Of a stretch of DNA of 64,000 nucleotides, positions 32,595-56,515 are shown in pieces. The stretch spans positions 62,001 to 126,000 of IMG/VR virus record IMGVR_UViG_3300024259_002152. One strand, written 5' to 3'. Position numbers and translations under genes: made by a program. The notes beneath the pieces are model-generated. The model worked only from the letters and a program-made list of their open reading frames with translations. It made no database searches and was not told where the DNA came from. Numbering within the stretch: position 1 is the first letter of the stretch; each line of letters begins with the position of its first letter.

Positions 32595-32901
32595 ATTAAT
32601 AGGAACTACTGTATTTTATTGGCATGATGCTAAAAAGGAAATGCCAAAGTATGATAGGCCAGTTCTCTTAAAAAGAGAGCCACGTGATAAAGGCAATCCA
32701 ACAAGAGAGAATTTTATTAGTGCATGTCGGAAAATAGATTGGTCCGACGGGCAGGATTATTGGGATTATGTTGGGAAGGTATTTGAAGAATATGAGTTTA
32801 ATGTTGTTGGTTGGGCATATCTGGCAGAAATGGTATCTAATGATATATCAGAGAATAAGACAAGTGAAATAAATGATAGATTTGAGATATTAGATTTATA
32901 G
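32569..32901 (+). CDS. DUF551-like small phage protein with C-terminal RFEILDL tag (start probably ATG 32587)
   Basis: WHDAKKEMP...VVGWAYL pattern; ends INDRFEILDL*. Confidence 0.65.
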   Translation: MIENLDMNKLIGTTVFYWHDAKKEMPKYDRPVLLKREPRDKGNPTRENFISACRKIDWSDGQDYWDYVGKVFEEYEFNVVGWAYLAEMVSNDISENKTSEINDRFEILDL

Positions 32902-47748: not shown

Positions 47749-48108
47749 ATGAGATTTATACGTAAAGAGTTTATAGTTACTACTATATTTAATAAAGAAT
47801 TAACAGAGAGGGACGAAGTCCTAATCGTTTTTAACAATTTATTAAATGAGAGGATAGAGTTCGCTATGACTATGAAGAAGTATATGCCTATGCAACAAGA
47901 CTATTTCAATATGAGTTTTGAAAAAGTTAGGGTGAAGAGAATCAACGATGATGATACTGTTGATTTGTTAGCTTTCAAGAGTGGGGTTAAAACTAACATA
48001 AAGGGGGTTCCTTTTGATCATATCATAGAAGTAAATGCGACTACTAAAAAACATAAAATTTTAGATATTGACTCCGATTTAAATCGTTTTGATATATTAG
48101 ACTTGTAA
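47749..48108 (+). CDS. Hypothetical protein with C-terminal tag (NRFDILDL)
   Basis: 119 aa. Confidence 0.7.
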   Translation: MRFIRKEFIVTTIFNKELTERDEVLIVFNNLLNERIEFAMTMKKYMPMQQDYFNMSFEKVRVKRINDDDTVDLLAFKSGVKTNIKGVPFDHIIEVNATTKKHKILDIDSDLNRFDILDL

Positions 48109-48815
48109 TGACAGAAGAAGTAAAAAAAGAAGTAAAAGAATTAATAGATCAATATAAATTAGATTGTTCTATTGAAGAGTTTAAAAACAAAGCAAATTGG
48201 GAAAAAATTTCTCATTATGACTTCCTTTCAGAAGATTTTATTAGAGAATTTCAAGATGAAGTACATTGGGAATATCTTTGTTTTTATCAACTATTGCCAG
48301 AAGACTTTATTAGAGAATTTAAAGACGAGGTACATTGGGATAATGTTTTTATATGTCAAAAAATATCAGAGAATTTTATTAGAGAATTTAAGGATAAAGC
48401 AAGTTGGAGAGAAATTTCTTATTATCAAGAATTATCAGAGAATTTTATTAGAGAATTTAAAGATGAAGTAAATTGGAACAATATTTGTCAGAAACAAAAG
48501 TTATCAGAGAATTTTATTAGAGAATTTCAGGATAGGGTAAATTGGCATTGGACTCCCTTTTATCAAACCTTATCAGAAGATTTTATTAGAGAGTTTCAAG
48601 ATAAAGTAGATTGGGTGGCTGTATCTTTTTGTCAAGTATTATCAGAAGATTTTATCAGGGATTTTAGAGACAAGATTTCTTTAGGGTATTTATCGAGTAA
48701 TCAAAAAATAAATGTCTCAGAAGAATTTCGAAAAGGAATAAAAAATGGAAAAATATTACCTCCTCCAATAAAACCATTTTCTTTTGGTAATAGAGTAGAA
48801 ATGTTGGACTTATAA
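48108..48815 (+). CDS. 23-aa tryptophan-repeat protein (7 repeats) with C-terminal tag (NRVEMLDL)
   Basis: W-x6-Q-x-LSE[D/N]FIREF-x-D-x-V-x repeated; tag at 48792-48815. Confidence 0.85.
   Translation: MTEEVKKEVKELIDQYKLDCSIEEFKNKANWEKISHYDFLSEDFIREFQDEVHWEYLCFYQLLPEDFIREFKDEVHWDNVFICQKISENFIREFKDKASWREISYYQELSENFIREFKDEVNWNNICQKQKLSENFIREFQDRVNWHWTPFYQTLSEDFIREFQDKVDWVAVSFCQVLSEDFIRDFRDKISLGYLSSNQKINVSEEFRKGIKNGKILPPPIKPFSFGNRVEMLDL
48198..48680 (+). repeat. Seven imperfect 69-bp tandem repeats (core TCAGA[A/G][G/A]ATTTTATTAGAGAATTT)
   Basis: Visible in DNA and in protein; first Trp codon at 48198. Confidence 0.85.
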
Positions 48816-49162
48816 TGTATAGAGTTGTAGTATTAAAAGAGAAAGATAATAGTTGTTCAGGTTGTTTTGGAAAATCACTTGGATTCTGCTCGAGTTATCA
48901 GTGCCTTACAGGAAATACCTCTTCTGATAGGTCCACTACTGCTTGTATTAATAAAAACAAAGATATTAATAGATATGTCCAGGGTTTTTTGAGATCAAAA
49001 GCACAAGTCCTAAATGACTATAATAGCACAGAAGAAGTTATTAATTCGTTCATAAGATATCTAGAAAATATTGGTAGTACAGATGATGATGCTATTATTG
49101 TAGAAGAAAAGGAAGAAAAAGAAGAAATTATTGAAGACAGATTCGAAATGTTGGATTTGTAA
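48815..49162 (+). CDS. Cys-cluster hypothetical protein with C-terminal tag (IEDRFEMLDL)
   Basis: CSGC...C...C...C; 115 aa. Confidence 0.7.
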   Translation: MYRVVVLKEKDNSCSGCFGKSLGFCSSYQCLTGNTSSDRSTTACINKNKDINRYVQGFLRSKAQVLNDYNSTEEVINSFIRYLENIGSTDDDAIIVEEKEEKEEIIEDRFEMLDL

Positions 49163-49650
49163 TGACAGAAAAAGTAAAAAAAGAAGTAGAAGAAATAATA
49201 AAAGAATATAAATCACAAGTTTCTGTTAGTTATATTCGGGCATTTGAAGATCAGAAATTTGAAAGTCAGGCATTTTGGCAGTCTATTTCTCAATTCCAAA
49301 TTTTATCAGAAGATTTTATTAGAGAATTTCAAGATAAAGTATGGTGGTATGCTATTTCTTGGCATCAAAAATTATTAGAAGATTTTATTAGGGAATTTAA
49401 AGATGAAATAAATTGGTATCAAATTTTTTTACATCAAAAATTATCAGAAGGTTTTATTAGGGAGATTACTGAGAACTTGAAAGACGACAAGAAGTTTTAT
49501 TATGAAGAAAATTTAAGATGTTTACTTAGAAACAAAAATATACCAAATCAAATAAGAAAAGAGATAAATAATTATGGAAAAATATTACCTCCTCGTGGTC
49601 CAATAAAATTATTTTCTTTTAGTGATAGAGCAGAAATGTTGGACTTATGA
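49162..49650 (+). CDS. Tryptophan-repeat protein paralog (3 repeats) with tag (DRAEMLDL)
   Basis: Shares N-terminus MTExVKKEV and C-terminal GKILPP...FSF with 48108. Confidence 0.8.
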   Translation: MTEKVKKEVEEIIKEYKSQVSVSYIRAFEDQKFESQAFWQSISQFQILSEDFIREFQDKVWWYAISWHQKLLEDFIREFKDEINWYQIFLHQKLSEGFIREITENLKDDKKFYYEENLRCLLRNKNIPNQIRKEINNYGKILPPRGPIKLFSFSDRAEMLDL

Positions 49651-50165
49651 CAGAAGAATTAAAAAAAGAAATAGAAGAAATAATAAGAATTGAGAATCTT
49701 AGTTGTTCTGTAGAAGAATTTATTATAGAGGCAAATGATCCTATTTATAGAATTCCCATAGAAGAAGTTCCTTCTATGGAGGGGAAGAAAAGGGTGTGTA
49801 TAAAAACTACTCTGTGGAGTAGAATTTGTCAACATTGTAGTTTATCAGAAGATTTGATGAGAGAATTTATTGAATTACTTCATTGGCCTGGTGTATCTTG
49901 TCATCAAAAATTATCAATAGAATTTGTTAGAGAGTTTAAACACAAAATTCATTGGTATTGGCATACTCATAGAACAGATTTGTCTTATGATTTTATTTTA
50001 GAATTTGAAAAATATTTAGATTGGGAATATTTGATGAAAAAGAAATATTATATATCTGATAATCAAGGTTTTTTTAATGGTGATTTAGATTTTTCTTTAG
50101 AAGAATATAAAAGATTTAAAGAAGAAAATAAAATTCATAGTAGATTTGGTATTTTGGACTTATGA
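49647..50165 (+). CDS. Divergent tryptophan-repeat protein (3 repeats) with tag (SRFGILDL)
   Basis: WSRICQHCSLSEDLMREF, WPGVSCHQKLSIEFVREF, WYWHTHRTDLSYDFILEF. Confidence 0.75.
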   Translation: MTEELKKEIEEIIRIENLSCSVEEFIIEANDPIYRIPIEEVPSMEGKKRVCIKTTLWSRICQHCSLSEDLMREFIELLHWPGVSCHQKLSIEFVREFKHKIHWYWHTHRTDLSYDFILEFEKYLDWEYLMKKKYYISDNQGFFNGDLDFSLEEYKRFKEENKIHSRFGILDL

Positions 50166-50189: not shown

Positions 50190-51605
50190 ATGAAATACAA
50201 TAATAAAGATTTTGTTCACTTTCACACACATTCGGAATTTAGTCAGTTTGACGGTTTGGCCAAGGTAGATGATCTTGTTCTTCAAGCTCGAAAGATGGGA
50301 TTTCCATCATTAGCACTTACGGACCATGGATCGGTTATGGGCTGGGTTAAATTTCTCCAGGCAGCAAGAGCTACTAAGGACAAAAAAGGGAAAGATATTC
50401 CTTACGCTCCTATTAAACCTATCCTTGGTTGTGAATTTTATCTGGCTCGAAAAATGAGTATAGGTCAAAATGAGGAGAAAAGAGATACTGATCTTATAAA
50501 AAAATGGCAGCCCGATGGGAGAAGAGGAAATAGACATTTGAATCTCTATGCTATGAATTTTGAAGGATATAAGAATGTATGTCGTATGTCCCAAAGGTCT
50601 TTTACCGAGGGTTTTTATTATGATGCACGTATCGATATTGATTTAATATCAAAACACTCTAAAGGAGTAATGTGTGGTTCAGCATGTCTATCTAGCGTTA
50701 TTAACGCTAATTTAATGTATGGTCGTTACAACCAAGCTAAACAGGTTTGTGGTGTTTTGAATGAGATATTTGATGGTAATTTTTTTCTAGAAATAATGTA
50801 TCATGGGATTAGGGAAGAAAGAGAAATTATTCCTTTAATCTTAAAATTATCATCAGAATTAGATATTCCTGTAGTTGCTACGAATGATTCTCACTACATT
50901 TATAAGGATCAAGGAGAATCTCAAGAAGTCCTATTGTGTATGTCTCAGCAAAGATGTGTTAAAGATCCAAAGAGATTAAAATTTGGTCATATGGAGTTCT
51001 ATCTAAAAAGTGCAGAAGAAATGGGCAGGATGTTTGGGCATATCCCTCATAGTTTGACTAATTCTGTTGCTCTTGCGGAGAGAATTAATACTAAAGATAT
51101 AGAAGATAACCTTTTTGGGGGCATGAGACTGCCAAAGTTCGATATACCTGAAAAGTATAAAAGTCCTTATGATTATTTATCTGATTTAGCATGGCAAGGC
51201 ATGAAAAGAATAGGTTGGGATCAGAGTAAAGAGCATGTTGAAGCACTAAAAAAAGAGTTAGAAGATGTTCTGGTCGCTCAAGAAAATAATAATTATGATT
51301 TCTCAACTTATTTTCTAATTGTTCGTGATTACATTCTTGACGCAAAGGAAAAGGGTGTTTTGGTGGGTTGCGGTAGAGGGAGTGGTTATGCTAGTGTGCT
51401 ATTAAGATGTATTGAAATTACTTATGGAGTTGATCCATTAAAATATGGACTTCTTTGGGAAAGGTTTTTAGGATTTGATTCTAAGAAGTTTATTAAAGAG
51501 TCAGATTTCGGCTTTGAAGAAGATTTGGTGCAGGCGGCGGCAGATAAAGATTTAGGAGGAGATAGAGAGTTAGAAGATGATTTGGGAGGGGTAGATAGAT
51601 ATTAA
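50190..51605 (+). CDS. dnaE: DNA polymerase III alpha, N-terminal fragment (PHP domain to ERFL)
   Basis: FVHFHTHSEFSQFDG, LTDHG, PILGCEFY, ATNDSHY, YFLIVRDYI, VGCGRGS, DPLKYGLLWERFL, then an acidic tail and stop. Confidence 0.93.
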   Translation: MKYNNKDFVHFHTHSEFSQFDGLAKVDDLVLQARKMGFPSLALTDHGSVMGWVKFLQAARATKDKKGKDIPYAPIKPILGCEFYLARKMSIGQNEEKRDTDLIKKWQPDGRRGNRHLNLYAMNFEGYKNVCRMSQRSFTEGFYYDARIDIDLISKHSKGVMCGSACLSSVINANLMYGRYNQAKQVCGVLNEIFDGNFFLEIMYHGIREEREIIPLILKLSSELDIPVVATNDSHYIYKDQGESQEVLLCMSQQRCVKDPKRLKFGHMEFYLKSAEEMGRMFGHIPHSLTNSVALAERINTKDIEDNLFGGMRLPKFDIPEKYKSPYDYLSDLAWQGMKRIGWDQSKEHVEALKKELEDVLVAQENNNYDFSTYFLIVRDYILDAKEKGVLVGCGRGSGYASVLLRCIEITYGVDPLKYGLLWERFLGFDSKKFIKESDFGFEEDLVQAAADKDLGGDRELEDDLGGVDRY

Positions 51606-51619
51606 AGATTGGAAAAATA

Positions 51620-51880
51620 ATGACAGACAAAAAAGAAAAATTTAATATAGGGTGGGGAGACAGACGGGTAGGAGTTATTGGAAAAGATGGAGAAATGATA
51701 GGCAATTTTGTTGTTTTTGACCCCAAAACAAGAATGTTGAAATCTGTTGATGAAAAAGGAGAAGTAGTAAATTTAATTATGGATGCCGATTGTAGGACAT
51801 GGATTCCAGAAGAAATAGAGAAAAAAGAAACAGAAGAGGATATAGGGATAGAGAATCGTTCAGATATTTTGGATATTTGA
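51620..51880 (+). CDS. Hypothetical protein with tag (IENRSDILDI)
   Basis: 86 aa. Confidence 0.7.
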   Translation: MTDKKEKFNIGWGDRRVGVIGKDGEMIGNFVVFDPKTRMLKSVDEKGEVVNLIMDADCRTWIPEEIEKKETEEDIGIENRSDILDI

Positions 51881-51997
51881 AGAAAGTAGATAGATATTAG
51901 TGCAGAGAAGAAAGAGATAATATATCTAAACTTTAGTAATGAATGTTCTATTTGGAAGATTAGTTCTATCATTAACAAAAGGGATGTGAAACATTTT

Positions 51998-52153
51998 ATG
52001 ATAGATGATAATAAATGTTTTGTTATAGGGTGTCTTGGTGTTAATGAAGAAGCATATGTAGGAGAATATGTGTTTTTCAGAGATTTTAATCATTGTCTGA
52101 GGTTTAAAAAAATAGAAGCAATTCATGATAGATTTGAGATAATGGACTTATAG
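51998..52153 (+). CDS. Small ORF missed by the track, with tag (MIDDNKCF...IHDRFEIMDL); frame is open back to 51890
   Basis: Hand translation: 51 aa from ATG 51998; no stop between 51890 and TAG 52151-53. Confidence 0.65.
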   Translation: MIDDNKCFVIGCLGVNEEAYVGEYVFFRDFNHCLRFKKIEAIHDRFEIMDL

Positions 52154-52162
52154 GAGAAAAAA

Positions 52163-52687
52163 ATGAAGAGATCGTGTCATATTTGCAAACATGGTGTTAT
52201 AGTTGAATATAAATATGAAGATGATTATGACGAGGACTATATTTTTAAAGGATCGGTTATATTTTGTATTGCAAATCCTCCTCTTTTTGTAGGGGATGAT
52301 GATCATCGTTTTGGGAATGATCTTCAGATCGTAGAAGGAGAAAAGGAGATAAAGGAATATTGTTATTATCCTGTTGTTTATAGAAATGATAATGAGAATA
52401 TAGAAGAAGATGATGAAGATGATGAATATTATGGTAATGGAGAGATAAGTGTTGCTCCTTGTTCTCTTTATTGTGAATCGGCCACTAATAAAACTAAATA
52501 TACGAAGAAATTGGAGAAAATAGAAAAAGAAAAGCAAGAGCAAATAAAAAAAGCAGAAACTAAGAAGAAAGCAGAAGCCAAGAAAAAAGCCGATAAGTTA
52601 CAACGTAAAAAAAATAATAAAAAACGGAAACTAAAAGAGCAAGAAGAAATGAAATTAAAAAACAGATTTGAAATATTGGATATATGA
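52163..52687 (+). CDS. Cys-containing protein with Lys-rich coiled coil and tag (NRFEILDI)
   Basis: CHIC..., KKAE repeats; AGGAG RBS overlaps the preceding stop. Confidence 0.7.
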   Translation: MKRSCHICKHGVIVEYKYEDDYDEDYIFKGSVIFCIANPPLFVGDDDHRFGNDLQIVEGEKEIKEYCYYPVVYRNDNENIEEDDEDDEYYGNGEISVAPCSLYCESATNKTKYTKKLEKIEKEKQEQIKKAETKKKAEAKKKADKLQRKKNNKKRKLKEQEEMKLKNRFEILDI

Positions 52688-53010
52688 AATACAAAGTAGG
52701 AGATAAAGTAAGGATTAAGATATGGGAAGACATGTTAATAGAGTTGTGTAATTATTGGGAGACTCTAGAACAGGCAAGAAACCGTCTTGAGGATCAACAT
52801 ATCTGTCTTGAAAAGGAACTTAACAAGGTAAATGTTGATAGGATTTTGACTATTGAAAGTATAGAAAAACGTGAAGGTTATTATTGTTATCGTACAAAGG
52901 AGAAAGGTTGGGAATGGACTGAGGATATGATAGAAGGGATAGTAGAAGACGTGATAGAGGACCGAATTGAGGATAGAATAGAAAGTAGATTTGAGATATT
53001 GGATATATGA
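52684..53010 (+). CDS. KOW/SH3-like small protein with tag (IEDRIEDRIESRFEILDI)
   Basis: Paralog of 30506 and 53671. Confidence 0.75.
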   Translation: MKYKVGDKVRIKIWEDMLIELCNYWETLEQARNRLEDQHICLEKELNKVNVDRILTIESIEKREGYYCYRTKEKGWEWTEDMIEGIVEDVIEDRIEDRIESRFEILDI

Positions 53011-53402
53011 AATTTATAGAAGTAATAGATTATAATAAGTCATATCCTCAAGGTATTTTTGTAAAAATTCCTATCAAAGATATAAAGAAATTTCATAAGG
53101 TTGAAAAATATACTAGATATTATATAGATTTAGATGATTCAGAACGTTTGTTAAAACGTAAGTATAAAGAACACCTTGGTAATCACATGTTTATCGAGAA
53201 ATCTGAAAATGGTCAATATTATAGTGCTGGGATTATGATTAATCATAAAACACAGATACAATGCCAATCGTCATGTGGTGGTAGTATATATTTTTATTTT
53301 TCAGATTTGGATTATGAAGAATTTGAGGGAGAAGCTCGGTTGTATGATTTGTCGTTACATATTGCCGATATTAATTATAGATTTGAGATATTGGATATAT
53401 AA
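53007..53402 (+). CDS. Hypothetical protein with tag (DINYRFEILDI)
   Basis: 131 aa; ATGA overlap. Confidence 0.7.
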   Translation: MKFIEVIDYNKSYPQGIFVKIPIKDIKKFHKVEKYTRYYIDLDDSERLLKRKYKEHLGNHMFIEKSENGQYYSAGIMINHKTQIQCQSSCGGSIYFYFSDLDYEEFEGEARLYDLSLHIADINYRFEILDI

Positions 53403-53404
53403 AA

Positions 53405-53671
53405 GTGACAGATAAAGAATTTTTACAGATGGTGAGAAATTCATTTGCTCAGGTTCGTAATAAGGGTAATTTGCCTACTGGTCCTGAGCTAATTGAATCA
53501 TTATTATCAGTTCAACCTATGACTGATGAATTAGTTGCAGAGGGATATACTAATGAATTAATAAAATTAGGAAGTTCTAATTTGCAGCGTAAAAAAGTTA
53601 TTATTACAGCATATATGGATATTAATTATAGATTTGAAATATTGGATATACAAAAACAGGAGATAAAGTAA
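53405..53671 (+). CDS. Hypothetical protein; tag extended by QKQEIK
   Basis: GTG start; ...RFEILDI then CAA where sister copies have TAA/TGA/TAG. Confidence 0.65.
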   Translation: MTDKEFLQMVRNSFAQVRNKGNLPTGPELIESLLSVQPMTDELVAEGYTNELIKLGSSNLQRKKVIITAYMDINYRFEILDIQKQEIK

Positions 53672-53940
53672 TGAAATATAAAACAGGAGATAAAGTAAGG
53701 ATAAAGACAAAGGGTCAGATGGAGAAAGAATTTGGCTATTATGACGAAGAAAGCAAATTCATAAATTGTGATCAACATTTTTCTTCTATTATGGAAGAGG
53801 CACTGAATCGGCTAGATAGTGATAGAATTCTTACTATTAATCATTTAGAATATTTTCAAAATGTTAATTATTATTACATGAGGGAAATAGAGGGATTTTG
53901 GACTGATGATATGATAGATGAGTTAGTAAATGATAAATAG
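53671..53940 (+). CDS. KOW/SH3-like small protein; tag lies just downstream in the +1 frame (possible frameshift)
   Basis: MKYKTGDKVRIK...; 53930-53962 reads MINRFEILDI* in the +1 frame. Confidence 0.7.
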   Translation: MKYKTGDKVRIKTKGQMEKEFGYYDEESKFINCDQHFSSIMEEALNRLDSDRILTINHLEYFQNVNYYYMREIEGFWTDDMIDELVNDK

Positions 53941-53971
53941 ATTTGAGATATTGGATATATAGGAATAAAAG

Positions 53972-54505
53972 ATGAGTGAAGTAAGTAAATTATCAGAAGA
54001 AGATCTTAAAAAAATAGCGGATATGATGGTTGATCAGGCAGTAGTGCCGTCTCCTAAAGCAATTATTAAAATAGAAAATGAGACTGTTCCTGAAACTGAT
54101 ACAATTAAAAGATATAAAAGGTCTAATAAACAATTACGGACAAAAGTAGAAAGACAGATTAGCGAAATAGCCAAACAGGAAGCAGAGATAAAAGAGTTGC
54201 AGGTAAGTGCTTATCTTAATACGGATGAGGCTAAAGATACGATCAATAAAAAATTAAGAGAAGAAAAACAAGCATTAAAGCTAAAAATGGAAGAGCAGGG
54301 ATTAAATTTTGAAAAAGAGCGCAAAGAAATAATAGAGACAAGAAGTAAGATTTATGAGTTAGAACGAACAATAGGGAGTAATAAGAAAGAGATTGAGGGG
54401 CTAAGAACAGAAGTGGATCAATTAATGAATGATAATAGAGAACTTCAAGCAGAGATAGATGCTAGAATTAAAGCAGATGGTAGATTTAATATAATGGATT
54501 TATAA
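53972..54505 (+). CDS. Coiled-coil protein with tag (GRFNIMDL)
   Basis: 177 aa, heptad-rich. Confidence 0.75.
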   Translation: MSEVSKLSEEDLKKIADMMVDQAVVPSPKAIIKIENETVPETDTIKRYKRSNKQLRTKVERQISEIAKQEAEIKELQVSAYLNTDEAKDTINKKLREEKQALKLKMEEQGLNFEKERKEIIETRSKIYELERTIGSNKKEIEGLRTEVDQLMNDNRELQAEIDARIKADGRFNIMDL

Positions 54506-54541: not shown

Positions 54542-56515
54542 ATGGCAGATTTAGCAGATATTAAAAAAGAGATAATAGGATATATCACTAAAAAGCACTC
54601 CAAGAGCGATAAATTACCAAAAATTATTTCTAAAGTGAAAGAAGAACTCGATGTTTTAGAATCGACTGACGGTTTAGAAGGCAAGAATAATTTAGAAGTA
54701 TTTTATAATACATGGAAGAGCCACAAGGGAGAGGTGGGTCATAAAAATGACATTAATAGTTGGGCTGCTTTCTTCCTGGGGATAACGGAAGTAAAACCTG
54801 ATGGAGATTTTCTTCCGACTAGGCGTGCTTTTGCTAGGGCGGGATTCCCTGATATTGACACTGATTTTGATTACGAGAATAGGGATACTGTTTATTCTTA
54901 TATAATTGATAAGTATGGAAGAGAGAATGTAGGGAATATTGGCACTCACGGATTATTGAAATTTAAATCATGTGTGACCAGGGTGACTAAAGCTTTAGAT
55001 CTAGCAAATGCTTATCACAAAGGTAGTGATGCTTTTGTTAGCGAAAATGCTGCTAAGGTAACAGAAATTTTATCTCCTTTTCCGAAAATGGGACTAGTGA
55101 AAGTTACTGACGATGATGGTGAAAGTTACCTTATAAAAACTTTCCAAGATGCTTATGATCATTGTCCAGATTTTAGACATTATGTTGACAAATATGAGAG
55201 TAGTCATTTCAAAGAATATATGGAGCATATAGAAGGGACATTTGCTAATTTCGGCTGCCATGCTGCAGGAATAGTTGTTTCTGATATTCCTCTTGATGAA
55301 ATTGCTCCTTTGAGAAATGCTAAAAAGGGAGTTCTTGCCACTCAATTCCCTAATGAAGATTTGGAATCAATAGGTCTTATTAAATTTGATGATCTTGCTC
55401 TTTCTACTTTATCCATTGTGAAAAAAACAGTAAAAATGGTAAAAGAACATTGGGGAATAGAAGTAGATCTAGAAAATCTGCCTATGGAAGATGATGCTAC
55501 TTTCGAATTATATCGTAGAGGAAATTTGGGTGGAGTTTTTCAGTGTGAAAATAGTGGCATGCAAAAAACTATGAGAGATATAGGAGTAGATCGTTTTGAA
55601 GATATTATAGCGGGACTAGCTCTTTATCGTCCTGGACCTATGGATAGTATTCCTGAGTATTGTGCAAGAAAGCATGAAGAAAATGAAATTAGTTACTTTC
55701 ATAGGTCAATTGAGCCATTTGTAAAATCTTATTTAGAAAGCACATATGGAATCTTATGTTATCAAGAGCAAGTTATGCAGATTTGTAATAGTCTTGCAGG
55801 TTTTACTATTACTGATGGCTACATAATGATTAAGTCGATTGGTAAGAAAAAAGAATACTTAATGAAGCGTTTTGAAGAACAATTTATTTTAGGTTGTGAA
55901 AGAAATAAAGTGCCGTCAGATGTTGCTAAGCAATATTGGGATAAATTTATAGTTCCTTTCTCTGGTTATGGGTTTAATTTGGCTCATAGTGCTTGTTATG
56001 GTTATAATTCTTACACTACAGCATATCTAAAAGCTAATTATCCTGATGAATTTATATGTTCTTTATTAGATGTGACGATAAATAGTTCTCAGGGTGAAAG
56101 GTATGATAAAGTTTCAGCATTTGAGAGGGAATTTAAAAGAAAGATGGGTGTTAAATTTCTTCCCAGAGATATAAATAAGTGTAAAGTATCATTTACTATC
56201 GAAAAAAGAAAAGATCTTGCAGAAGGTGTAAAAAAAACAGAAATACGTCCTAGTCTTTTATGTAAAGGGCTTTTAACTAAATCTGCCAAGAACATAGAAG
56301 AAAATCAACCTTATGAAGATATGAGAGATATAGTTAGAAAAACTGATTCTTCGTTAGTTGATACTAGGGTTATAGACGCTTTGGCTACAGGGGGATATTT
56401 AGGTAAAAAGCATATAGAAGACTCTTCTGTTATAGTAAAAGATTTTGTCATGATCAGAGAGGATATGAAAAAAACTGCTAAAAGAGGGGTAGAAACTATT
56501 GATATATTTGGTTAA
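54542..56515 (+). CDS. dnaE: DNA polymerase III alpha, C-terminal fragment (catalytic Asp residues, fingers, HhH)
   Basis: GFPDIDTDF, YIIDKYG, GCHAAGIVVS, GLIKFDDLAL, GVFQCE, LALYRPGPM, TYGILCYQEQVMQI, YGFNLAHS, LKANYP. Confidence 0.93.
   Translation: MADLADIKKEIIGYITKKHSKSDKLPKIISKVKEELDVLESTDGLEGKNNLEVFYNTWKSHKGEVGHKNDINSWAAFFLGITEVKPDGDFLPTRRAFARAGFPDIDTDFDYENRDTVYSYIIDKYGRENVGNIGTHGLLKFKSCVTRVTKALDLANAYHKGSDAFVSENAAKVTEILSPFPKMGLVKVTDDDGESYLIKTFQDAYDHCPDFRHYVDKYESSHFKEYMEHIEGTFANFGCHAAGIVVSDIPLDEIAPLRNAKKGVLATQFPNEDLESIGLIKFDDLALSTLSIVKKTVKMVKEHWGIEVDLENLPMEDDATFELYRRGNLGGVFQCENSGMQKTMRDIGVDRFEDIIAGLALYRPGPMDSIPEYCARKHEENEISYFHRSIEPFVKSYLESTYGILCYQEQVMQICNSLAGFTITDGYIMIKSIGKKKEYLMKRFEEQFILGCERNKVPSDVAKQYWDKFIVPFSGYGFNLAHSACYGYNSYTTAYLKANYPDEFICSLLDVTINSSQGERYDKVSAFEREFKRKMGVKFLPRDINKCKVSFTIEKRKDLAEGVKKTEIRPSLLCKGLLTKSAKNIEENQPYEDMRDIVRKTDSSLVDTRVIDALATGGYLGKKHIEDSSVIVKDFVMIREDMKKTAKRGVETIDIFG

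Follow-up and report, generated by a model that had tools for sequence, protein, structure and literature searches.

It is rare, to our knowledge, for an essential enzyme to be cut through its active site, and the open puzzle of such cuts is what holds the pieces to each other. The question is raised here by the dnaE locus of a huge phage, analyzed in a window of 64,000 nucleotides (bases 62001-126000 of the 350,866-bp IMG/VR phage record IMGVR_UViG_3300024259_002152, for which CheckV estimates a completeness of 73%), where two genes, dnaE-N and dnaE-C, together specify what is predicted to be a replicative DNA polymerase of the DnaE type (C family), and where the clade keeps a dead duplicate of one subdomain at the cut. 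We propose, with a probability of roughly 0.7, that the two products form a two-subunit polymerase with overlapping halves and a dead docking copy. Both genes would be overlapping fragments of one ancestral dnaE, each carrying the palm-entry subdomain (residues 286-393 in Escherichia coli), and the active site would be assembled in trans from the two subunits: N would supply the PHP domain and a live palm entry with its nucleotide-binding GRGSG loop, and C the metal-binding DxD strand, the third catalytic Asp, the thumb, the fingers and the HhH domain. The second palm entry, at the head of the C protein, would be catalytically dead yet keep its original fold and be retained by selection, serving together with the N-tail segment FIKESDFGF as a docking module that joins the chains. 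Such an arrangement would have originated by duplication, followed by reciprocal degeneration of the copies.

The whole record contains exactly two matches to PF07733, the Pol III alpha palm family, and these are dnaE-N and dnaE-C, which lie on the plus strand 2.9 kb apart with eight small open reading frames (ORFs) in the gap (Table 1). In the N protein, Pfam detected the PHP domain (PF02811) at amino acids (aa) 10-205 with an E-value of 1.2e-41, and positions 2-100 of the PF07733 profile at aa 329-433. In the C protein, positions 69-259 of the same profile were matched at aa 72-285, the fingers (PF17657) at aa 289-455 (E = 1.7e-48) and HHH_6 (PF14579) at aa 536-621 (E = 1.7e-8); the gene stops about 35 residues past the HhH domain, and no Pfam family for a C-terminal OB fold or tau-binding region was found up to an E-value of 1. 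The live motifs are partitioned, with GRGSG in N only and the DxD strand and third Asp in C only. Residues G395, R396, G397, S398 and G399 are invariant across 65 N fragments, as are P103, D104, D106, D108 and F109 across 71 C fragments; we take D283 of C to be equivalent to D555 in the VKFDFLG motif of E. coli. The AlphaFold2 model of the C protein, built with 71 family members (mean predicted local distance difference test [pLDDT] of 88.9), matched solved Pol III alpha structures with a Foldseek E-value of 1e-32 and a Z-score of 25-27 for the body; on the E. coli enzyme (Z of 27), aa 96 of the model falls on residue 394 and the body follows from there. Altogether, the PHP domain, the Pol-beta-like palm motifs (split over two chains), the fingers, the HhH domain and the overall fold are those of a DnaE-type enzyme, whereas the single continuous polypeptide is not: there are two ORFs, with no intein and no intron.

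Table 1. Positions of the features of the split dnaE locus in the window (all on the plus strand)
Feature	Position	Strand	Basis or remarks
dnaE-N gene, 471 aa	50190..51605	+	PHP, live palm-entry subdomain and conserved tail
Live palm-entry copy (N aa 324-431), ends ERFLGF	51159..51482	+	hhalign and complex model
GRGSG, nucleotide-binding GS motif of Pol-beta-like palm (N aa 395-399)	51372..51386	+	Alignment
N tail	51483..51602	+	FIKESDFGF (51489-51515), variable acidic linker, terminal EDDLGGVDRY (51573-51602)
Filler between the dnaE halves	51620..54505	+	Eight small ORFs, five of which end in an R-F-[EDN]-I-[LM]-D-[LI] tail
dnaE-C gene, 657 aa	54542..56515	+	Dead palm-entry head (predicted), DxD strand, thumb, fingers, HhH
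Head, predicted catalytically dead second palm-entry copy (C aa 1-93)	54542..54820	+	Fold and profile comparison
GHKNDINS, degenerate GS-loop counterpart (C aa 66-73)	54737..54760	+	phmmer and hhalign alignments; GS motif lost
PDIDTDF, catalytic DxD strand (C aa 103-109), single copy	54848..54868	+	Aligns to PDIDTDF of Taq Pol III alpha
KFDDL with third catalytic Asp (D283)	55382..55396	+	K281 and D283 invariant
C-terminal IDIFG (C aa 653-657)	56498..56512	+	[ST].D[IL]F. in relatives; F656 near-invariant

Positions 69-100 of the PF07733 profile occur in both genes. This overlap is special when set against two controls: the HNH-split dnaE of Bacillus phage vB_BauM_KLEB27-3, whose pieces do not overlap (fingers 1-48 and 59-162), and an intact relative of the present enzyme (P0049), which gives one continuous PF07733 match, 1-260. 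When the whole C gene was compared with the PDB by phmmer, alignments reached back to aa 24 (E. coli residue 317) and aa 35 (Taq residue 390). An earlier note on this DNA, made from the letters alone, had placed a degenerate second copy of the palm-entry helices at the start of the C gene, within 54626-54868. Those limits needed correction at both ends: the duplicated domain comprises aa 1-93 (54542-54820) and starts 84 nucleotides earlier than claimed, and 54868 is the end of the single-copy PDIDTDF strand rather than an edge of the duplicated segment.

With these limits, 66 head segments (aa 1-93, ending ahead of the shared RRAFARAGFPDIDTDF) were made into a profile and aligned to a canonical DnaE profile of 80 full-length sequences (76 bacterial, one Salmonella gene from a phage collection and three phage genes). 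The hhalign comparison, which the earlier note had proposed as a check, gave a single match at the collinear place, joining head residues 25-86 with ...ELQVINQMGFPGYFLIV... (P = 5.8e-4, score 33.2), a score reached by none of 120 column-shuffled head profiles (maximum 27.3) and not by the reversed profile (18.6). The copy is recognizable by its likeness to canonical DnaE, in profile and, as described below, in fold, whereas the likeness between the N and C genes that the note had pointed to is not significant. Its observation that the GS motif persists in the N copy and is gone from the C copy held, GHKNDINS standing in C opposite the invariant GRGSG of N; because this motif is lost, the head copy is predicted to be unable to bind nucleotide.

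The head also folds as expected of a palm entry. When AlphaFold2 was given head sequences only, the head alone was modeled with a pLDDT of 88.8 and a predicted template modeling score of 0.75 as a four-helix domain (helices 4-18, 25-41, 50-60 and 74-79 in the model of the entire C protein). VIA-align matched this domain to the palm entry in 11 solved structures of C-family polymerases (Z-scores of 5.0-8.0, the best unrelated chain reaching 4.0); residues 1-93 lie on 315-413 of Mycobacterium tuberculosis DnaE1 (Z = 8.0, 86 residues, root mean square deviation 2.8 Å), on 286-393 of the E. coli enzyme (Z = 7.7), on 825-965 of PolC (Z = 7.0) and on 304-455 of the Taq enzyme. Foldseek returned 32 PDB matches with E-values up to 10 among 350,542 chains, and 14 of the 32 were C-family polymerases. 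Rigid superposition of the whole C model aligned only the body, leaving the head outside the alignment. The head ends at E. coli residue 393 and the body begins at 394; onward from the border of PHP and palm, then, the order of DnaE is kept collinearly in the C gene. Altogether, we regard the second copy as real once its limits are corrected; its significance at the sequence level is moderate and is strengthened by fold and position.

Conservation suggests that this copy is kept for a reason. The pattern G.KN.INSW is retained in all heads, the most divergent included, and 12 head positions are invariant or nearly so (L51, Y55, W58, G66, N69, N72, S73, W74, A76, T82, P86 and F90). The mean pairwise identity over aa 25-93 is 47%, the same as in the C-terminal third of the enzyme, and over 100 clusters show the head this well conserved, which argues that the dead copy is under purifying selection. 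The live copy in N is far more canonical, its family segment aligning to positions 270-377 of canonical DnaE with P = 9e-31. The head resembles canonical DnaE at least as closely as it does the clade's own N copy.

The N tail that follows the live copy has a mean pairwise identity of 62% in aa 432-442 (FIKESDFGF), 26% in the linker (aa 443-461) and 77% in aa 462-471 (EDDLGGVDRY). In an anchored alignment, the SDFGF of the tail stands opposite the canonical PDFDVDF; the tail by itself gives no significant match (P = 0.078, at another place). This suggests, as a lead only, that SDFGF is a dead remnant of the catalytic DxD strand. Some N fragments lack EDDLGGVDRY and terminate just past SDFGF.

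The two-gene layout is widespread. A search with the C fragment gave 4306 matches; among the best 120 are 91 split forms of full length, often on contigs of 275-502 kb. The pattern of the N search parallels this, with at least 120 homologues of 430-520 aa among the matches listed, on contigs of up to 473 kb. In a search of 1.84 billion representatives, the head profile retrieved 68 clusters at 50% identity; in every match examined the head lies at the start of a C fragment or within a fused DnaE, and there was no canonical DnaE palm entry among the matches. This breadth bears on the trivial explanation that the split is damage or artifact, i.e., a pseudogene, an assembly error or a frameshift, with no functional two-part enzyme. 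The record is indeed a metagenomic contig of incomplete length; however, many samples yielded the layout, with over 90 clusters of full-length C and over 110 of N, some of them on the large contigs just mentioned, the catalytic motifs are all invariant, and the genes in the gap differ between phages, so that we give this explanation practically no weight.

Relatives with a single dnaE gene are of two kinds. Five fused forms carry both palm-entry copies (P0047, P0083, P0256, P0262 and P0267); in P0047, residues 1-442 align to N and 468-1100 to C. Five intact forms have neither head nor tail (P0049, P0065, P0066, P0071 and P0092), and their junction reads ...ERFLGFDEDDDGKRFFARAGFPD.... The head and the FIKESDFGF tail are both present in the split and fused forms examined and both absent in five of five intact forms.

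How the subunits might be held together was addressed by complex prediction, in which the N protein (471 aa) was modeled with aa 1-520 of C in three runs and with three controls. The N-C model scored 0.88 on ipSAE, the interface score, against 0.00 for the best control, with a partner pLDDT of 86; the runs gave 356-373 confident contacts and agreed on 88-91% of them. In the calibration of the tool, 58 of 80 solved complexes attained its mark, as did 2 of 110 mismatched pairs. Residues 381-392 of N touch residues 109, 120-121 and 290-294 of C, which would put the live N copy in its canonical place beside the DxD strand, with the active site built in trans. The confident interface further includes residues 38-99 of the head and residues 424-442, 445 and 449 of N, although whether head and tail touch each other is not given.

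The earlier note had suggested that the duplicated helices form the interface between the subunits, or else a domain swap. The first suggestion agrees with the complex model, from which its support comes; the second does not, the model showing no swap, with the live N copy at the canonical place and the head elsewhere. A docking role for the head is favored by its place in the predicted interface together with the joint loss of head and tail in the five intact forms. The head might instead be a true dead copy whose main job is something other than N-C docking, such as binding another replisome partner (exonuclease, helicase, clamp loader or clamp) or regulating the active site. Conservation proves a function but not which one, and the fused relatives retain the head even though their chains are joined; moreover, EDDLGGVDRY is highly conserved and lies outside the confident interface of the model, so that partner-binding peptides are plausible in this enzyme, and this decapeptide may itself bind another replisome protein. 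We nevertheless hold this alternative to be unlikely, since residues 38-99 of the head fall within the predicted interface and since head and FIKESDFGF disappear jointly in all five intact forms, where docking would be superfluous.

A more specific version of the docking proposal is that the heterodimer is held by a fossil mirror site, in which the C head with its GHKNDINS loop faces the strand remnant SDFGF of the N tail, a reciprocal swap left by the duplication. It would mirror the packing of the live site, where the GRGSG-bearing palm entry of N would lie against the DxD strand of C. This is a tentative idea that we would not bet on. If true, each chain would lend a strand to the helical module of the other, the fission of an essential polymerase would have been made tolerable, and genes that re-fused and repeatedly lost head and tail together would amount to a natural reverse experiment.

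Several results weigh against the proposal of a duplicated docking domain. BLASTP of N against C gave no match at the palm-entry place; the head profile against the N profile of the same clade gave, by hhalign, an E-value of 0.85 at the wrong place, and against the right N segment only, an alignment that was collinear yet had a P of 0.1. With the head alone, HMMER searches of the PDB (hmmsearch) and Pfam (hmmscan) found no DnaE match, only spurious low-complexity or coiled-coil ones. The Foldseek E-values for the head are all above 1, and none is significant; a Z of 8 is within the range that the VIA tool warns of as chance level for helical folds. Beyond the head itself, the score of the complex may partly reflect memory of known intact DnaE structures, the five intact relatives presumably work with neither of the two elements, head or tail, and the long tail is missing from several N fragments.

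The failed head-only searches, the insignificant comparison with the N copy, and the ease with which small helical domains reach a Z of 7-8 by chance (as the tool itself notes) would all be expected if the head were a helical extension of the N terminus unrelated to DnaE, such as a domain that binds a partner, and if its likeness to a palm entry arose by chance or convergence with no duplication at all. The Foldseek E-values above 1 point the same way. What makes this improbable in our judgment is that three independent comparisons, i.e., the anchored sequence alignments, the unanchored profile-profile match and the fold match, agree on one collinear place directly upstream of the DxD strand, and that C-family polymerases account for 14 of only 32 Foldseek matches drawn from so many chains.

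The history of the split was approached with quick trees of the C part (102 rows, with four canonical outgroups) and of the N part (129 rows), in which the outgroup branches are long and recombination is not accounted for. In the C-part tree the basal lineages are split, and the intact forms fall into three nested positions and the fused forms into two. By approximately unbiased (AU) tests, a monophyletic grouping of the intact forms was disfavored (p = 0.023), as was a position of these forms beside the outgroup (p = 0.0099). The intact forms again need three changes in the N-part tree, where P0047 and P0083 adjoin N fragments without the long tail, and P0262 lies near the root on a long branch. 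Because the intact forms are nested in both trees and because of the AU tests, a simple series from intact through duplicated to split was rejected, and the head-less intact genes appear to be derived; the root state could have been split, or fused with both copies.

In spite of their three places in both trees, the intact forms share a similar junction, ERFL[GA]F-x4-5-GKR[FV]FAR. This similarity hints at one re-fused allele that spread by recombination rather than at three separate deletions. As to the origin proposed in the earlier note, partial duplication with subfunctionalization accords with the overlap of about 100 residues, the partition of the motifs and the conservation of the dead copy, whereas duplication as the cause of the split is a conjecture, and the second copy may have arisen within the gene or by capture of a 5'-truncated dnaE.

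The locus was also inspected for elements that could have cut the gene. Halves joined by a split intein, or a gene cut by a homing endonuclease, intron or other mobile element and then spliced, would have precedents: dnaE genes of marine metagenomes have been found fractured, with split inteins and endonucleases (PMC2677866), the Bacillus phage dnaE is HNH-split, and inteins (PF14890, PF14528) sit inside the C fragments of many relatives. In the present genes, however, neither N nor C has an intein or Hint domain; the N tail and C head are without intein motifs (DSKKF opens the N extension), and the predicted fold of the head is that of a DnaE palm. The gap at 51620-54505 gave no Pfam or PHROG function and no homing endonuclease, there is likewise no endonuclease in the N-C gap of three relatives' loci, and Rfam found no family above threshold and no intron anywhere in the window. 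The fused forms P0047 and P0083, furthermore, keep the entire tail and head in one chain. Intein, homing endonuclease, and intron or RNA element were accordingly rejected as causes, and we consider a fractured gene of this kind very improbable.

Among the relatives, C fragments with one or more inteins include P0012, P0025, P0032, P0039, P0040, P0048, P0070, P0076 and P0105, and some of these inteins have LAGLIDADG or Hom_end domains; the C gene in the window has no intein. Across the clade, the dnaE locus is a hotspot for mobile elements. An IS605 OrfB or Cas12f-like TnpB gene lies 4 kb upstream of the intact dnaE P0066 (at 945-2189 of locus L011). The relatives' gene order runs from N through one to three unrelated genes (methyltransferase, HD or unknown genes) to C, and then to conserved RecA, Toprim and SpoVS genes.

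In the window, the G+C content is about 32%, the GC skew is positive in every 2-kb bin, so that the cumulative skew climbs monotonically, and the long ORFs inspected near dnaE are all on the plus strand. Neither PolA, PolB (PF00136) nor a beta-clamp domain 3 was matched in the 350-kb record, which is 73% complete. The C-terminal IDIFG of the C protein resembles a clamp-binding motif at the extreme C terminus, a possible function that we infer from these residues and their conservation.

Throughout the record, 31 otherwise unrelated small ORFs, all on the plus strand, share the C-terminal ending ...[NSD]-R-F-[ED]-I-L-D-[LI], where about one would be expected by chance; 12 of the 31 lie in the window (with ORF ends at 32901, 44422, 47203, 47445, 48108, 49162, 50165, 52153, 52687, 53010, 53402 and 54505). 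The RFEILDL tail is found in two related phage loci (L010 and L011) and not in two others (L008 and L009). A role at the DNA level, for example as promoter or cassette boundary, was rejected for it: synonymous sites and stop codons vary, and nothing is conserved past the stop, which argues for selection on the peptide. We read the tail as a probable tag, for docking or targeting, that a common partner recognizes. Just upstream of dnaE-N, three ORFs (48108-48815, 49162-49650 and 49647-50165) consist of repeats of about 23 residues of the type LSEDFIREFQDKV.W. All three match a family without assigned function, phrog_3532 (E = 1.6e-65 in the case of the first), and an RF.ILDL tail is present in one of them or more.

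The clade is frequent in metagenomes, with contigs reaching 500 kb, and it includes its own natural controls (split, re-fused with the duplicate, and re-fused without it), which lend themselves to a direct test of gene fission through duplication with complementary loss. For enzyme design, the case suggests a way of splitting a polymerase without inteins; for annotation, it accounts for the pair of overlapping DNA_pol3_alpha pieces that Pfam reports in such phages. Neither the overlap nor a dead palm-entry domain was described in the literature that was searched. What is new here is the palm-entry overlap with a dead copy; split polymerases as such were already known.

Bacterial DnaE or Pol III alpha (E. 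coli, 2HNH; Taq, 2HPI; M. tuberculosis, 5LEW) has the same domains and motifs in the same order. The enzyme in the window differs in being two polypeptides, in having the palm entry twice, one copy live and one apparently dead, and in having no OB or tau-binding part by Pfam; the link before its DxD strand is 11 residues longer, even in the intact relatives. Weinheimer and Aylward reported PF07733 as typical of the largest marine jumbo phages and did not mention a split. A close parallel is the minimal split Pol III alpha of the group 2.2 jumbo phages, for which Iyer et al. (2021; PMC7824862) proposed reassembly in trans, and which is likewise cut between the NTP-binding subdomain (GS, here in N) and the Mg- and template-binding subdomain (DxD, here in C). 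The group 2.2 version, however, has no PHP domain, its genes are far apart, and it is accompanied by a family B polymerase, whereas the present version has full PHP, fingers and HhH domains, its genes lie 2.9 kb from each other on the same strand, and no PolB was found in the incomplete record. The overlap by a duplicated subdomain is a feature of the window's enzyme and is not reported for group 2.2 in the passages of that paper that were read.

Fractured genes, among them dnaE, have been described with split inteins and endonucleases (PMC2677866). Such genes and the dnaE of KLEB27-3 resemble the present locus in that an essential phage replication enzyme occurs as two neighboring genes on the same strand with foreign genes between them; the cut in KLEB27-3, however, is clean, lies in the fingers and leaves no overlap, whereas the split described here keeps about 100 homologous residues on both sides. 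The cyanobacterial split DnaE also consists of two genes, but its halves are trans-spliced, are cut at another site and lie at separate loci, and there is no sign of splicing in the phage enzyme. In a wider sense, the arrangement recalls duplication-degeneration-complementation and pseudoenzyme domains, which usually concern whole genes or regulatory elements. As in duplication-degeneration-complementation, there are two copies of a segment, each chain keeps a different essential motif, and one copy is conserved and inactive; unlike in the usual cases, what would have been copied here is a single subdomain at the fission point of one enzyme.

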